Assembly (NCBI GenBank): GCA_028826165.1
Contig: JAPDFW010000015.1
Location: 1-64,000 of the forward strand
DNA from: Anaeramoeba ignava BMAN
Lineage: Eukaryota > Protista > Anaeramoebae
Length of the DNA: 64,000 nt
Reading direction: 5' to 3'
Shown piece after piece: positions 1 through 9,131 of the stretch (position 1 is the first letter of the stretch; every line of letters starts with the position of its first letter). The position numbers were made by a program, and so were the translations under genes. Under the pieces are notes generated by a model that was not told the DNA's origin, made no database searches, and saw only the letters and a program-made list of their open reading frames with translations.

Positions 1-3000
1 TCAAACGAACAGCTTCATCAACATCAATTTTTCAACATGATTTGATAACCTAATTTTAGCATGAGCTTCGGATATCCTAATCAAAGACTCTAATTGCCTA
101 GAGGAGTCGCAGTGATTGTGTTTTTATTCCCTCCAATCTTTCTCATATCGCAATAAGCATTAACAAGAGAAGTAAAAAGCTTCATCAGAAATAATTGGTT
201 TACATTTACGTTTTGCATATGGAAATATATTGAGTCAATGTTTGTTTGTCAATTACTTCCTCGCTTTGAGTTTCTGGTTTTCTCGAATAAAGCGAGAGAA
301 TATGATGAGCAAGTCTGCGATCTTGTTGTTCATTTGGTTTGTCGAAAATCAAGTAAATCAAATCAAATCTTGATAATAAAGTTGGTGGTAATTGAATATT
401 TTCAACAACTGTTAGTCTTGGATTGTATCTTGAATCTTTTGGGTTTGCTGATGCAAGAACAGATGTTCGCGAATTCAAAGTTGCGATTATTCCTGCTTTG
501 GCAACAGATACTGTTTGTTGCTCCATTGCTTCATGAAGAACTGTTCTTGTATAATCACTCATCTTATCAAATTCATCAATACAACATATTCCTCCATCAC
601 TTAGAACTAATGCTCCGCTTTCGAGTACTAATTCTCTTGAATCAGGATCTTTTGTAATAAATGCTGTTAGTCCAACTGCTGAACTCCCTTTTCCTGATGT
701 GTATACTCCTCTTGGTTGCAATTTTATTTACATATGATAATAATTGTGAATTATGTACAATTATTCCATTCGCAATAAAATTACTTCCTTTGCTTGATTC
801 CAAATCATAAACCCAAATTGTTTCCTTTTCTTTCATTTCAATTTTTTTGATTTTTTCTAATTTGAATATTTTTTTAATTTCTTGCTTTTTTAAATTTCTT
901 TTGATAATTGGAATTTCTTCTTGTTTAAAATCTTCAATTATTATCTTTTCTTTTTTTGTTAAAATTTTTTCAATGTTAAATAAGAATTTAGGATGAATTT
1001 TGGATAGTTTGTTCTTTTTAATTTTGATTTGATAATATTTTTGTTTTTTATAAATTTCATCTTCAAATTCAAATTCAAAATTTTTCTTTTTCTTAATCTT
1101 TGTTTGAATCCCAAATCTTAATAATATCATAAATAATTCTAAAATGAATCTCTTGTTTTTATTTGAATAAATAATTGATTTATTCTTGAATTTTCCTTCT
1201 TGAATCAAAAGAACTTCTAAATAACTTGTAATTATTAAATTTGATGATGTTTTGATAATTTTTGGAATTGATTCATTTTTTTTCAAAGAAAATGAATCTG
1301 ATAAATTTTGATAAATAAATTTGTAAAGATGAGAATTTCTATTGAATTTAACAAATAATTTTTGATAAAGGTTTTTGATTTCCAAATCATTTTGATCAAA
1401 TTCAGTGTTTAAAATGTTGGTTATATCATTTAAAATGATTGAATTTTCAGAATCAAAAATTAAATAATATACTTTATCATCAAAAGATCCAAATTTGCTT
1501 ATAAAATTAATATAAAAAATCAATCGAGCCTTTTTTTGATTGATTAAATTGTTATTTTTTTGTAATGAAATTTCTTGATAATTTTGAATATTTTTTGGAG
1601 AAATAATTTTCAATCCTTTAAAAAGATCTTTAGCTTGAATTTTATAGATTTTATCATTAAAAGAAGTGAAAAAGGGATGTTCAAGTGTTGATTTAATTGA
1701 AATTCCATTTTTAAGTGTTATTTTTAATAATTGAGAAACTTTTCTTCTTGAAACAGTCGGAACAAATGATTTAACTTGGTTATAATGATTTGTAAATGAA
1801 ATGATTGAAAGATTATTTTTTGAAGCAAATATTCCTTTTGAGAGTTTAATTCCTGAATTTTCATGAAATATTTCTTGAAAAGTTTTTAAATTTCCATCAG
1901 ATAATTGAATTAAAGTATCTCCTGTTAAACATTTTGAAGTTCCTGGATCACCAATGATTAAAACATTAATTTCTGATCTGAATCTACCGCCTCCTGAACG
2001 ACTAAATTCTTTTTCAGTTCCTGAAAATAGTTGACATAAAACACCTTTTTAACATCTTCTAAACCCCAAATACTTGGAGCTAATTTTTTTGATTTAAATT
2101 TATTTTTAAATTAATTTTTGGATTTAATTTTTATTTTTGAATTTTTAAATTAACCTAATGATCTTGTTAAATTTTCATAAATATTTGGTGATTTTCCAAG
2201 TTTCTTTAAATTTTTTTCAAGTTTTTTAATTTGTTCTTCAGTTTGATTCATTTCAACCAAAGTAGAAATATCACCTAAATTAATTCTTCCATCAGAAACC
2301 CTATTTTTATCAAATTTTCTGAAATGAATTACATCAATATATGTTCTATATATTGATTTAACAGATCTTTTTCTTGGGTTAGTTCTTATTGGAATAGCTC
2401 TAAAAATTCCAGTAAGTTCAATACGGTCACCTGGTCTAACATTTTCAACAAGATCTTCATAACACATTAAATTAACAGTTTGAGGAGTTTCACCATCAGG
2501 TATAGCATCTTATTTTATTATTTATTTTAAATATTTATTTTTAATATTTATTTTTAATATTTATTTTAAATATTTATTTTGAATATTTATTTTGAATATT
2601 TATTTTAAATATTTATTTTAAATATTTTGAATATTTATTTTAAATATTTATTTTGAATATTTATTTTAAATATTTATTTTGAATATTTATTTTGAATATT
2701 TATTTTGGATATTTTGAATATTTATTTTAAATATTTATTTTAAATATTTTGAATATTTATTTTAAATATTTTGAATATTTATTTTAAATATTTTGAATAT
2801 TTATTTTGAATATTTATTTTGAATATTTATTTTGAATATTTATTTTAAATATTTATTTTAAATATTTATTTTAAATATTTATTTTAAATATTTATTTTAA
2901 ATATTTATTTTGAATATTTATTTTAAATATTTATTTTGAATATTTATTTTAAATATTTATTTTAAATATTTTAAATATTTATTTTAAATATTTATTTTGA

Positions 3001-5711
3001 ATATTTATTTTGAATATTTTGAATATTTATTTTAAATATTTATTTTGAATATTTTAAATATTTATTTTTAAATATTTATTTTTAAATATTTATTTTAAAT
3101 ATTTTTAAATATTTATTTTAAATATTTATTTTGAATATTTATTTTGAATATTTATTTTGAATAATATTTATTTTGAATATTTATTTTAAATATTTATTTT
3201 TAAATATTTTAAATATTTATTTTGAATATTTATTTTAAATATTTATTTTGAATATTTATTTTTAAATATTTATTTTAAATATTTTTATATATTTATTTTA
3301 AATATTTATTTTAAATATTTATTTTAAATATTTATTTTGAATATTTATTTTTGAATATTTATTTTGAATATTTTATATATTTATTTTGAATATTTATTTT
3401 GAATATTTATTTTGAATATTTATTTTGAAAATATTTATTTTGAATATTTATTTTAAATATTTATTTTAAATATTTATTTTAAATATTTTAAATATTTATT
3501 TTAAATATTTATTTTAAATATTTTAAATATTTTGAATATTTATTTTGAATATTTATTTTGAATATTTATTTTAAATATTTATTTTGAATATTATAATAAT
3601 TATTAATCTACCAGGTGTTTCTTGAAGTTTTAAAATTTGTTTATCACTAAATTTGCAACGATTATGTATTAATTCCATTGAAAAACGTTGAGAACAATTT
3701 GAACAAATTAAAGGTTCACTAATTCTTCCTTTTTGAATTGAAACAACTTCTTCAAAAGAACATTCTTGACATTTAAAAAAAGCTTCTTTAAGATCAGGAA
3801 TGATTTGAGATGTTCTTGTAATCATTCCACGAACACAAACAATTTGATCAATATTATTTGGATCAAGATCTCGAAGATTTTTAACATCTGATTCAAGAAG
3901 TCGAAATAATCGAACTTTTATTGGGTTTTTAAATGTTGTTTCATTATCTTCTCCTTGAACAGCTCGGATTTCTGTGCTTAAATCCTTTATAACTAAATCA
4001 AATATTGTTATTATTTCTTGTGGATATTTTATTGTTTGTTTGTATAAATTTTCATTAAATTGGAAAATATGTTGACAATCAATATTTAATGAATTTTGTT
4101 CTGTTTCAACAACCTATTAAATTTATAAATATTAATATTTAATTTATAAATAATAATTTTGAATCTGTTTTTATTTACTTGTGATAAAATATCAAAATAA
4201 TATGGATTTTCATTTTCATTTCCATTAATTCGGAATTCATCAATAAATTTTCGAAAATTATTAATTGTATCTTCAACATTTATTGTTGTTCCCCAAATAA
4301 CAGTTCTGGAGAATGTTTCTATTTGTGAAGAATTAATTAAAGGTCTATCTAAATCAACTTGATTATTGCTATTATTGTTATTGTTATTGTTGTTGTTGTT
4401 ATTGTTGTTATTGTTATTGTTGTTATTGTTTTCATCTTGTTCCATTTGAATAACTGATTCTAAATTTTCTGTTTCAGAATCACTTTGATTTCTTTTTCTA
4501 TTTTATTTTATAAATATTCAAATTTTAATTTAAATTTTAAATTTAAAATTAATTTAATATTTAATTTTAAAATTATTTTTAATTTAAATTTTTATTGGAA
4601 ATAAAATAGTTTTTAATTTAATATTAAATTAAAATTAAATTAATTTAAAAATTAATTTGTTATATTTTTAAAATTATTTTTTTTTAATTTTTAAATTTTT
4701 TTATTGGAAATAAAATAGTTTTTAATTTAATATTTAATTATAAATTTTAAGATTTAAATTATTTTAAATAAAATTATTATTAAATATTAAATTAAAATTA
4801 ATTTAAATTTTATTATATTTTTGGATTATTTTTAATTTAAATTTTTAATGAAAATGAAAATAAGTTTTTAATTTAATATTTAATTTAAATTTTAAGATTT
4901 AATTATTTTAAATAAAATTATTAATTAAATATTAAATTAAAATTAATTTAAATTTTATTATATTTTTGGATTATTTTTAATTTAAATTTTTTATTGAAAA
5001 TAAAATAGTTTTTAATTTAATATTTAATTATAAATTTTAAGATTAAATTATTTTAAATAAAATTATTAATTAAATATTAAATTAAAATTAATTTTAAATT
5101 TTATTATATTTTTGGATTATTTTTAATTTAAATTTTTATTGGAAATAAAATAGTTTTTAATTTAATATTAAATTATAAATTTTAAGATTAAATTATTTTA
5201 AATAAAATTATTAATTAAATATTAAATTAAAATTAATTTAAATTTTATTATATTTTTGAATTATTTTTAATTTAAATTTTTTATTGGAAATAAAATAGTT
5301 TTTGATTTAGTATTTAATTATAAATTTTAAGATTAAATTATTTTAAATAAAATTATTAATTAAATATTTATTTAAAATTAATTTAAATTTTGTTTTATTT
5401 TTGGATTATTTTTAATTTAAATTTTTATTGGAAATAAAATAAGTTTTTAATTTAGTATTTAATTATAAATTTTAAGATTAAATTATTTTAAATAAAATTA
5501 TTAATTAAATATTAAATTAAAATTAATTTAAATTTTGTTATATTTTTGGATTATTTTTAATTTAAATTTTTTATTGGAAATAAAATAAGTTTTAATTTAG
5601 TATTAAATTATAAATTTTAAGATTAAATTATTTTAAATAAAATTATTAATTAAATATTAAATTAAAATTAATTTAAATTTTGAATTACTTTAATTTTGAT
5701 TTTTTATTCAT
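1..5711 (-). CDS. MCM4: DNA replication licensing factor MCM4 (CDC21/CDC54), spliced and intein-containing; 3' end runs off the window
   Basis: Exons assembled by hand with GT-AG junctions in consistent phase: 5711-5689 (MNKKSKLK), 4497-4179, 4113-3612, 2508-2155, 2079-<1. Motifs: [10 protein letters not shown]4 zinc finger [35 protein letters not shown], Walker A GDPGTSK|SQLL, Walker [10 protein letters not shown], arginine finger [24 protein letters not shown]. Apparent indels near 2048, 716, 220 and 100. Confidence 0.95.
750..1931 (-). mobile_element. Intein (394 aa) in MCM4 at the Walker A K|S site (CDC21-a-type), with a degenerate LAGLIDADG homing endonuclease region
   Basis: In-frame 1182-nt insert between GDPGTSK and SQLL. 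Block [14 protein letters not shown], block [14 protein letters not shown] (TxxH), AKDLFKG, block F VYDLE, block [12 protein letters not shown], followed by a +1 Ser. The middle resembles DOD endonuclease blocks ([23 protein letters not shown]). Confidence 0.96.
2509..3611 (-). repeat. MCM4 intron 3 (~1.1 kb) filled with a ~15-nt tandem repeat (AAAATAAATATT[C/T]AA-like)
   Basis: GT at 3611 and AG at 2510-2509 on the minus strand; the whole interior is degenerate tandem repeat. Confidence 0.9.
4498..5688 (-). repeat. MCM4 intron 1 (~1.2 kb) made of ~8 copies of a ~140-bp AT-rich minisatellite
   Basis: Recurring anchors ttggaaataaaatagtttt, ttttaagatt and tttggattattttt at ~140-nt spacing; GT-AG ends join MNKKSKLK to KRNQSDS in phase 2. 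Confidence 0.8.
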
Positions 5712-5966
5712 TTAAAATTAATAAAAAAAAAAGAAAATAATTTAAAAGAAATTTAATAAATTGTTAATAGAAGAAAGAAAGAAAGAAAAATAAAAGAAAA
5801 AAGAAAGAAAATGAAATTAAAAATTTTGAAAAAAAAAAAGGAAAAGAAAAAATTTTAATTTAATTTAATTTAATTTAACGGTTAATTTAAAAAAAATCGT
5901 TAAAAATAATTAATTAAAAAATTCTTTCTTTTTATTTCATTTTTTTATTAAAATTTAATTTAAAAA
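5712..5966. promoter_or_regulatory. Putative bidirectional promoter between MCM4 and the CENP-L-like gene
   Basis: 255 bp between divergent ATGs. Contains TTAACGGTTAA (5875-5885) and AATCGTTAA (5895-5903), the only CpGs in the spacer, and TCATT motifs on both strands. Confidence 0.5.
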
Positions 5967-7502
5967 ATGATTGATATTCCATTTGAAACAAATTTAAATT
6001 TAAATTTAAATAAAAATTTAAATAAAAATCAAAATAAAAAAAGACAAAGAAGAAAATCAAAATTTGAAATAAAACCAAATTATGAAGAAACAATTCAAGA
6101 AGAACAACCAATCAAATTAAGAATAACAGATGAAAATCAACCACCAAATCAAAAAGAAAAAAAACCAAGAACAAAAAGACAAAATCATTATTCAATGAAA
6201 ATTGTTGTTTCAAAAGAAAATCAAAATGATAAAAAAAAAGAAGAACAAAAAATAAATCCAATAATTTCAAAAGAAAATGAACAAATACTCAAAATAAATC
6301 CAAAAAAAAGACAAAATAATTTTACATTCCAAATTCAAATTCCAACAAAAATATCATCAAGTCAAAAAAAACAAGAAAATTCACAAGAAGAACAAAAGAT
6401 AATTGAACAAAAAGAAGAAAATATAAAAGATGATCCATTTTTTGATACAGAAAGTTTAATTGATATTGATTCACAAGAAGATCAAGAAGAAAGTTTTGAA
6501 GAAAATTTAGAAAATGGAAAAATTCAAGGATTAAGTCGAATTTTTCTTTCAAGTATTTTGAATTATGGTTCAAAAAATTTTGATAAAGATTCATCACTTA
6601 TTGAATCAATTACTAAAAATCTTAATCAAGAATTACAAAGTTTTCTTACAAATCGTTCATTAAATCTTGAATTATTAAATCAAACTAAAAACACTTTATT
6701 AAATTCCAAAGTTGATTTAAAATCAAAAGTATCTTTTGTTAATCTTGAAAATCAAGAGGACAAAAAAATTCCAAGTTTGAGAATTGAAATTGAAAAGAAT
6801 TCTTTATTAATGATTCAAATTTTTCTTTGTGGAAGATCATTCCAAAAAAAAAAGCATAATTGGATTCAAACAAAAATGGATCAAATAATTTTAGATTTAC
6901 CAATTGTTTTAATTAATACAAAAAAACAAGAATTAATTGAAGAATCAGGAATTCTTGAATGGATTCAAAAAAGATTTGATTGTTTGATTCATCCTTTAAT
7001 ATTTAGTCCAAATGAGATTATGAATTTTGTACAATTATGGACACAATATATTTATACAATTAAATCAAAAGATTTAAATTCAAAAGCAGAATTATTAAAA
7101 GAAAAAAATATAATTGATTTAAAAGAAGAAGAAAATAATTCTCAAAAATTCATAATCCAAAATTATGAACAAAAAGATTCTCCAATTCAAAAAAAACCTT
7201 TTGCAAATCAACAATCTATTGAATTTGTTTATTCAATACCTTTTATTAAAGGAATTGACCAAATCAACTATTTAATTCCTTTAGATCCAATTATTTCTTT
7301 AATTGAATCTGGTTTGACTTCAAATGAAATTATTGATTTAATTGAAAATAATTTTTATTCTCATTTTAAAATTAAAGTTACAAATCTAAATTTAATTCGT
7401 GTTTATTTCCCAGAAATTACAATTAAGAATAATGGGAATTTAATATTTAAATGTTCTAATTTTGCAGTTTCTTTTTTATCTCATTTATTTCAAATTATTT
7501 GA
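5967..7502 (+). CDS. CENPL: Centromere protein L (CENP-L/Fta1/Iml3)-like kinetochore protein with a long low-complexity N-terminal extension
   Basis: Intronless 511-aa ORF. LPIVL..ILEWIQKRFDCLIHPL..FVQLWT and FYSHFKIKVTNLNLIRV..NNGNLIFKC..FLSHL resemble the CENP-L pattern as recalled (W-x-Q-K-x-FDC..PL..WT; HFKI-x-L...L-x-RV...G). Recognised by eye, no HMM run. Confidence 0.75.
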   Translation: MIDIPFETNLNLNLNKNLNKNQNKKRQRRKSKFEIKPNYEETIQEEQPIKLRITDENQPPNQKEKKPRTKRQNHYSMKIVVSKENQNDKKKEEQKINPIISKENEQILKINPKKRQNNFTFQIQIPTKISSSQKKQENSQEEQKIIEQKEENIKDDPFFDTESLIDIDSQEDQEESFEENLENGKIQGLSRIFLSSILNYGSKNFDKDSSLIESITKNLNQELQSFLTNRSLNLELLNQTKNTLLNSKVDLKSKVSFVNLENQEDKKIPSLRIEIEKNSLLMIQIFLCGRSFQKKKHNWIQTKMDQIILDLPIVLINTKKQELIEESGILEWIQKRFDCLIHPLIFSPNEIMNFVQLWTQYIYTIKSKDLNSKAELLKEKNIIDLKEEENNSQKFIIQNYEQKDSPIQKKPFANQQSIEFVYSIPFIKGIDQINYLIPLDPIISLIESGLTSNEIIDLIENNFYSHFKIKVTNLNLIRVYFPEITIKNNGNLIFKCSNFAVSFLSHLFQII

Positions 7503-7618
7503 TTTAATATTTTTTTTTGTTTCTTTGTTTTTAAAAAAAAAAAGATTAAAAAACATTCAAACAAATAAATTCAATTATTTTGTTTTCTTTTTGAATTTGT
7601 TTCTTTTAAAATTTTGTT

Positions 7619-9131
7619 TTAACAACATGAAGATTTTTCTGATTTTTTTGTAATTGAAGATTCATTTAAAGTTTCAATATCTCTTGGAATTTTTTTTGGA
7701 GTTATTGGAATTTTTTTTGCTATTTTTTTTTAATCAATTCAAAAATAAAAATAAAAATAAAAATAAAAATAAAAATAAAAATAAAAATAAATTTTCTTTT
7801 TACCAATTTCAATAAAAAGATCATCAATATGATCTCCAGTTTTTGCGGAAGTTTCAAGAAAGATTATTCCTTGTTCTCTTGAATAATCTTCAGCAATTTT
7901 AATTTTAACATTTCTTTGTTGTTCCAAATCTAATTTATTACCAACTAAAGCAAGAATAACATTTGGATTTCCATTTTCTAAAATTTCATTAATCCAATTT
8001 TTAGCAATTTCAAAAGTATTCTAAAAAAAACCAATTAAAATTCATTTATAAAAATTCATATTAAAATTAAAATTCAAACCATTTGAGTAATATCATAAAC
8101 AATTATTGCTGCAACTGCATTTCGATAATACATTGGTGCAAGACTTCTAAATCTTTCTTGTCCAGCAGTATCCCATATTGAAAAATTTATCATATTATCT
8201 CCTACTTTTATTATTCTATCCATACATTGTGCTATTTTTTAAATTAATATATTTAAATCAATATATTTAAATCAATATATTTAAATCAATTTAAATCAAT
8301 ATATTTAAATCAATATATTTAAATCAATATATTTAAATCAATATATTTAAATTAATATATTTAAATTAAATATATTAATTTAAAAATTATTTAAATAATA
8401 TATTTAAAAATAATTTATATTTAAATATATTTAAATCAATATATTTAAATCAATTTAAATCAATATATTTAAATCAATTTAAATCAATATATTTAAATCA
8501 ATTTAAATCAATATATTTAAATCAATTTAAATCAATATATTTAAATCAATTTAAATCAATATATTTTAAATTAATTTAAATAATTTAAATCAATATATTT
8601 AAATTAATATATTTAAATTAATATATTTAAATCAATATATTAAAATTAATAATTTAAATATTTTAAATCAATATATTTAAATATTTTAAATCAATATTTA
8701 AATTAATATATTTAAATTAATATATTTAAATTAATTTATTTAAATTAATATATTTAAATTAATATATTTAAATCAATATATTTAAATTAATATATTTAAA
8801 TCAATATATTTAAATCAATATATTTAAATCAATATATTTAAATTAATATATTTAAATTAATATATTTAAATTAATATATTTAAATTAATATATTTAAATT
8901 AATATATTTAAATCAATATATTTAAATCAATATATTTAAATCAATATTTAAATTAATATATTTAAATCAATTTAGAAATAAATTTGGAAATAAATTTGGA
9001 AACAAACCTCCAATAGTTGGTAATTGATAAACAAAAAATTCATTTTGAGTAAAACGAAGAGCAATAGAAGTTTTTCCAACACCAGAATCTCCAAGAATAA
9101 CAACTTTACTATCTATTTGTATACTTTCCAT
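7619..9131 (-). CDS. Rab GTPase, Rab5/Rab21/Rab22 (endocytic) clade, 4 exons
   Basis: Exons 9131-9008, 8231-8080, 8020-7804, 7719-7619. [41 protein letters not shown] and a C-terminal CC prenylation motif. Confidence 0.93.
8232..9007 (-). repeat. Rab intron 1 filled with a ~15-nt tandem repeat (TTTAAATCAATATAT on +)
   Basis: Visible tandem repeat between the GT and AG junctions. Confidence 0.85.

Follow-up and report, generated by a model that had tools for sequence, protein, structure and literature searches.

The start of the window, by which we mean the whole stretch of 64,000 nucleotides from Anaeramoeba ignava BMAN that was analysed, carries on its minus strand an intron-containing gene that by its sequence encodes eukaryotic MCM4. 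The last exon of this gene holds an in-frame insert with the features of a class-1 intein. The following elements make up the host locus:

1 to 8979, no strand: duplicated stretch, equivalent to C2:664995-674451, ending in a 14-nt satellite at 8238-8971
1 to 2079, minus strand: last MCM4 exon, truncated at the contig start and containing the intein
about 2045, 716, 221, 174, 99-100 and 31: frameshifts in the window copy of this last exon
2080 to 2154, minus strand: GT-AG spliceosomal intron of 75 nt, boundaries predicted from sequence and reading frame
2155 to 2508, minus strand: MCM4 exon, end of the OB fold and linker
2509 to 3611, minus strand: GT-AG intron of 1103 nt filled by 86 copies of a 13-nt AT-rich tandem repeat, boundaries predicted
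3612 to 4113, minus strand: MCM4 exon with MCM_N, zinc finger and OB fold
4114 to 4178, minus strand: GT-AG intron of 65 nt, boundaries predicted
4179 to 4502, minus strand: 5'-most MCM4 exon identified, with a poly-Asn tract; the true start or a further exon may lie upstream

The MCM4 exons were searched separately, and the ten best PDB matches of the part behind the insert (the C-extein) are all MCM4, at 246 bits, where MCM7 reaches 204 and archaeal MCM 179. Together with the three GT-AG introns upstream of the intein, this bears out the nuclear, intron-containing MCM4 gene claimed in an earlier note on this DNA. An archaeal contaminant contig was considered and rejected in view of the introns, the MCM4 orthology and the eukaryotic neighbours. 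Intronic and intergenic DNA of the region consists of AT-rich tandem repeats (window 2510-3592, 86 copies of a 13-nt unit; 4524-5890, seven copies of a 145-nt unit), and related satellites recur on many contigs. An open reading frame of 511 amino acids to which no function was assigned (window 5967-7502, plus strand) is divergently oriented from MCM4; between its two copies in the assembly there are transitions, an in-frame indel of 27 nt and a pair of indels that compensate each other.

The insert itself and its immediate flanks are organised as follows:

1932 to 1952, minus strand: MCM4 Walker A motif up to the catalytic Lys, end of the N-extein
750 to 1931, minus strand: intein, 394 codons in the window copy and 393 in the clean C2 copy
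1596 to 1931, minus strand: N-terminal Hint (splicing) region, roughly aa 1-112, with Cys1; TIGR01445 at aa 1-89
1674-1688, minus strand: block B Thr82 and His85, inside the N-terminal splicing region
1002 to 1538, minus strand: LAGLIDADG endonuclease domain with two motifs, degenerate, roughly aa 132-310
1488-1508, minus strand: LAGLIDADG motif 1, acidic residue and first glycine lost
1194-1223, minus strand: LAGLIDADG motif 2, Glu245 retained
750 to 866, minus strand: C-terminal splicing region, aa 356-394, with block F Asp376 and block G His393-Asn394; TIGR01443
747 to 749, minus strand: +1 Ser of the C-extein, which completes Walker A and is the predicted splicing nucleophile

As the earlier note had described, 394 stop-free codons (1182 nt) lie in frame between GDPGTSK and SQLL. 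When the bases of 750-1931 were shuffled, none of 20,000 shuffles gave a fully open frame and the longest run was 146 codons. The MCM P-loop model is matched at its positions 39-70 before the insert and at 81-224 after it. The HMM search proposed in that note found both expected parts, since the insert matches Pfam Intein_splicing (E 2.7e-14, aa 9-394) and LAGLIDADG_3 (E 3.3e-5) as well as the NCBIfam models intein_Nterm (TIGR01445) and intein_Cterm (TIGR01443), both above cut-off. An AlphaFold model of the intein (pLDDT 85, pTM 0.85) found its best Foldseek matches in archaeal endonuclease-bearing inteins (TliVMA, E 6e-19; PI-PfuI, 3e-17). Pfam, NCBIfam and this model with its Foldseek matches all give a Hint fold, although the model was built from an alignment with archaeal relatives and its fold is therefore not independent of the HMM evidence.

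All class-1 splicing residues named in the earlier note are present (Cys1, Thr82/His85, Asp376, His393-Asn394 and the +1 Ser), and the six that lie within the intein do not vary when it is aligned with 24 archaeal relatives. An in-frame insert in a conserved host protein with this full set, including the +1 Ser, reads as a class-1 intein; a class-3 intein was rejected because the block F Cys is absent and the only Cys is residue 1. The insertion directly after the MCM Walker A Lys also agrees with the definition of the MCM-a/CDC21-a site (PMC10643990), the site to which the note had assigned it. Archaeal inteins of this site (PMC10643990; Pho and Pab CDC21-1 structures 6RPQ and 6RPP) have the same insertion point and class-1 residues, the same Hint plus LAGLIDADG layout, and significant similarity to the MCM4 intein along its whole length. 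Unlike them, the MCM4 intein is Lys/Ile/Asn-rich and sits in a nuclear eukaryotic host gene with spliceosomal introns, and it has an eroded motif 1 and lacks a helix-turn-helix-like block of about 70 aa. The fungal VMA1 and PRP8 inteins are likewise nuclear, cis-splicing and situated in essential proteins, and PI-SceI is a structural match of our model (E 2e-10), but they belong to another host and another family, with about 10% identity.

The endonuclease domain has fared differently from the splicing domain. Position 147 in motif 1 is Phe where 17 of 18 parsed relatives have Asp or Glu, so that the acid expected in both motifs of an active LAGLIDADG homing endonuclease is missing from motif 1. 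Judged by this motif loss, the endonuclease is eroded and probably inactive, and selection appears to have spared the splicing residues while motif 1 lost its acid. We considered that three extra bases in the window copy might bring back an ancestral reading ahead of motif 1; against an HMM of archaeal inteins, the window and C2 copies score only 1.2 bits apart.

The intein is present twice in the assembly, once in the window at the start of contig C17 and once at C2:665739-666917, where a clean 393-aa intein lies within a single 806-codon open last exon. Past position 8979, contig C17 diverges from C2, and the sequence joined there is unrelated to C2. Over 1-2510, one substitution and eight small indels, most of them in homopolymer runs, distinguish the window from C2. 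Frameshifts fall at 716, 31 nt downstream of the intein, and at 2045, about 115 nt upstream of it, and a compensating indel pair lies inside the intein at 1514 and 1531-32. The window copy is a frameshifted second copy at a contig end that had been overlooked in the earlier note, and the clean gene is on C2. The differences in 1-2510 are nearly all small indels, mostly in homopolymers, and lie right where a nanopore contig ends; they look like unpolished long-read consensus error. Six transitions, eight further substitutions and an in-frame indel of 27 nt separate the copies farther along the overlap. These resemble real alleles, and this stretch may therefore be a second haplotype. Recent duplications of extein and intein regions as well as pseudogenised inteins are also mentioned in the published account of A. 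ignava inteins (PMC10710043). A genuine pseudogenised duplicate or a second haplotype, as opposed to a poorly polished contig end, is therefore conceivable for the window copy, but the error profile of 1-2510 makes it the less probable reading. The C17/C2 duplication as such may be a misassembly, a second haplotype or a real rearrangement. There is one MCM4 locus with the intein in both copies, and no uninterrupted MCM4 P-loop was found among the MCM matches of this genome.

Reading all MCM loci revealed inteins at site a (Walker A) in MCM3, MCM4, MCM6, MCM8 and MCM9, at site b in MCM5, MCM6 and MCM7, and at site c in MCM6, with two more in MCM8. This amounts to about eleven inteins in seven MCM paralogs, seven of them in five MCM2-7 subunits; the paralog names other than MCM4 are those we take to apply from sequence recognition and agreement with PMC10710043. 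Only MCM2 (L033 4619-5911, G000:C80) lacks an intein in the ATPase domain among the MCM2-9 paralogs. The site-b inteins and the site-c intein (L027 2324-4594, L029 4103-6100, L031 3868-7197 and L031 2546-3391) begin with Ser, not Cys, and those of MCM5/6/7 site b form one clade in a tree of the Hint region. Genome-wide, a single model detects at least 27 intein N-termini. The published survey (Gallot-Lavallee et al. 2023 PNAS, PMC10710043) gives 103 inteins in A. ignava BMAN and three each in MCM6 and MCM8, including a 160-aa intein at MCM8 site e and a 185-aa intein at MCM6 site c, and we recovered both at exactly these lengths.

Several further features of these loci were recorded. The middle intein of MCM8 changes frame soon after block B (L030 about 4750-4830; G000:C71 near 177,800), which is probably an assembly indel and possibly a sign of pseudogenisation. 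Spliceosomal introns, with boundaries read by eye, lie at or beside the Walker A site in four paralogs: at the empty site a of MCM7 (L029 3961-4103), just upstream of the intein in MCM8 (L030 6784-6440) and MCM9 (L032 5351-5060), and in MCM5 (L027 near 4986) a few codons past the empty site a. Such proximity of introns to intein sites is a pattern described in PMC10710043. A divergent MCM-like gene without Walker motifs (L034 3143-4884; G000:C71 near 108,000) is possibly MCMDC2-like.

Despite their shared site, the MCM4 intein and its neighbours in MCM3, MCM6, MCM8 and MCM9 are not close kin: it has no significant similarity to these four, which are alike among themselves, have class-1 ends like it, and belong to the VMA-like Hom_end_hint family (PF05203) with relatives in viral and bacterial helicases. 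Among 1.84 billion representatives, in databases that may lack Anaeramoeba records, its best matches are MCM proteins that carry an intein at this very site. All six top matches are MCM proteins, 27 of 150 fit a strict site-a pattern, and a query longer than the bare intein gave nine protein matches that were all MCM. Exact look-ups, subject to the same gap in Anaeramoeba records, returned no copy of it. Relatives that carry names are archaeal (Micrarchaeota, Heimdallarchaeota). The top match, P0001, aligns over the full length with E 1.8e-23 and 29% identity, and the nearest relatives are 29-33% identical, so that the closest similarity is to inteins of the same site, though at a distance. 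The host MCM of P0001 is closest to Woesearchaeota/Nanoarchaeota genomes, in three of which the site is occupied. An HMM of archaeal site-a inteins gave the MCM4 intein 152 bits and those of MCM3, MCM6, MCM8 and MCM9 at most 5; the archaeal set behind this HMM and the tree was chosen by similarity to the MCM4 intein. Many further relatives of the intein (P0007, P0013, P0026, P0036, P0038 and others) sit directly after the P-loop Lys of non-MCM proteins whose flanks resemble SMC, RFC, IF2 and SRP-type NTPases.

The phylogeny called for in the earlier note, against archaeal and other MCM inteins, places the MCM4 intein with archaeal MCM-a inteins and apart from the VMA-like clade. In the Hint-region tree it stands beside P0001 (support 100/92), a pairing that is lost in a smaller quick tree, on a long branch (1.53), and both sequences are AT/Lys-rich. 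A forced clade of all five site-a inteins is rejected (p-AU 0.00025). Spread from the MCM3/6/8/9 site-a inteins was discarded. We therefore regard the assignment of the MCM4 intein to a different family from its site-a neighbours as firm on sequence grounds. The intein is likely of archaeal type, while a DPANN donor is only a lead. Since the intein does not group with the VMA-like ones, it probably owes its place to a separate invasion of MCM4 site a, and on balance we lean towards a separate archaeal origin.

The main competitor to this origin supposes a long-resident intein, or one acquired from a virus or another Anaeramoeba gene, whose archaeal likeness reflects sampling, a long branch or composition. 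The long branch, the low identity and a third-position GC that equals that of the host (13% in the intein, 15% in the host) would all suit such a history, and a single clade with the site-b inteins of its own genome (MCM5b/6b/7b) is tolerated (p-AU 0.41). Viral and inter-paralog intein spread is also documented in PMC10710043. Against such a history, no match to the intein beyond its two copies was found in its own genome at E<=0.001, and its best matches out of all representatives searched are MCM inteins occupying the identical site. Furthermore, PMC10710043 counts only eight intein sites common to both Anaeramoeba species, with MCM8 providing the sole MCM one, and the orthologous MCM4 site is absent from those common with A. 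flamelloides. We thus consider an old-resident, paralog or viral source unlikely, though by no means far-fetched.

Taken together, the locus probably holds, in a single MCM4 gene, a class-1 intein that is selfish, belongs to the archaeal MCM-a family, is constitutively spliced and has an eroded endonuclease. Class-1 splicing begins with an N-S acyl shift at Cys1; the chain is then passed to the +1 Ser by transesterification, Asn cyclises, and an O-N shift follows. Inteins home by a double-strand break and gene conversion. The MCM4 pre-mRNA would lose its GT-AG introns and keep the insert. In the precursor, the N-S shift at Cys1 would be aided by Thr82/His85 and followed by attack of the +1 Ser, and cyclisation of Asn394, aided by His393 and Asp376, would leave Walker A completed by a Lys-Ser bond. 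Since MCM4 is an essential gene with one locus, we infer that the insert is retained in mRNA and efficiently spliced, and the intein is accordingly predicted to be splicing-active. It would have reached MCM4 from a donor of archaeal type through endonuclease-driven homing, apart from the MCM3/6/8/9 inteins, an affinity that we see and a direction that we presume, and its endonuclease would have eroded afterwards and is probably inactive. The intein would nonetheless persist and splice constitutively, since only its exact loss should be tolerated in the P-loop and imprecise loss should be lethal.

The earlier note had gone further and proposed that MCM4 ATPase activity depends on both RNA and protein splicing, with a conditional switch on replication licensing as the consequence. 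Its first part holds insofar as an unspliced precursor should, given the insertion site, lack a working P-loop; its second part finds no support. A domesticated intein acting as a switch on MCM4 maturation, and hence on origin licensing, in response to redox state, metal or temperature would fit the interruption of an essential P-loop. Occupation of conserved P-loops is, however, the standard parasitic pattern of inteins, and here the P-loop site is occupied in five MCM paralogs, with seven inteins in five MCM2-7 subunits. The MCM4 intein contains a single Cys and would therefore have no internal disulfide trap, and the presence of MCM8 alone among the MCMs in the shared Anaeramoeba sites, as given in the published survey, speaks against conservation of a regulatory role. 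How efficiently an intein splices can make a difference in vivo, as engineered loss of RadA intein splicing alters replication mode in Thermococcus (PMC11409957), but the MCM-a/CDC21-a site is recognised as a hot spot of homing (PMC10643990), and we rate a switch as quite improbable. A separate DPANN-type acquisition combined with lost mobility and retention as a switch gating assembly of the active MCM2-7 ring is slightly less probable still. Removal of the insert from RNA as an intron can be dismissed as next to impossible, even though spliceosomal introns occur in the gene and the insert has an AT-rich composition, because the insert has no GT/AG ends, its GC is 19.7% compared to 4-8% in introns of the same gene (published A. 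ignava intron GC is 8%, PMC11550330), and it is a fully open frame with complete intein motifs.

Our preferred reading of a selfish archaeal-type intein concerns an element that has very probably been noticed before, as the earlier note had suspected: the published inteins derive from the same BMAN assembly, and Fig. 5C of PMC10710043, on MCM inteins and introns, spans MCM3 to 9 with MCM4 named in the legend. Its motifs are clear and the published screening combined intein HMMs on predicted proteins with iterated BLAST, so it is very probably among the 103. The archaeal affinity may be on record too, as independent acquisition and inter-paralog transfer are both reported there; the main text discusses neither the MCM4 intein nor its affinity. 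What our analysis may add is this archaeal affinity, which sets the intein apart from its same-site neighbours.

One site in the MCM paralogs of a single genome thus appears to be shared by two unrelated families of inteins, one of which points to an archaeal donor. Nuclear inteins are rare in eukaryotic replication proteins, and A. ignava is the published exception to this rarity. A single MCM2-7 ring would require seven protein-splicing events in five subunits, which may make A. ignava a handy organism for asking whether the intein load of a eukaryotic replisome is purely parasitic.
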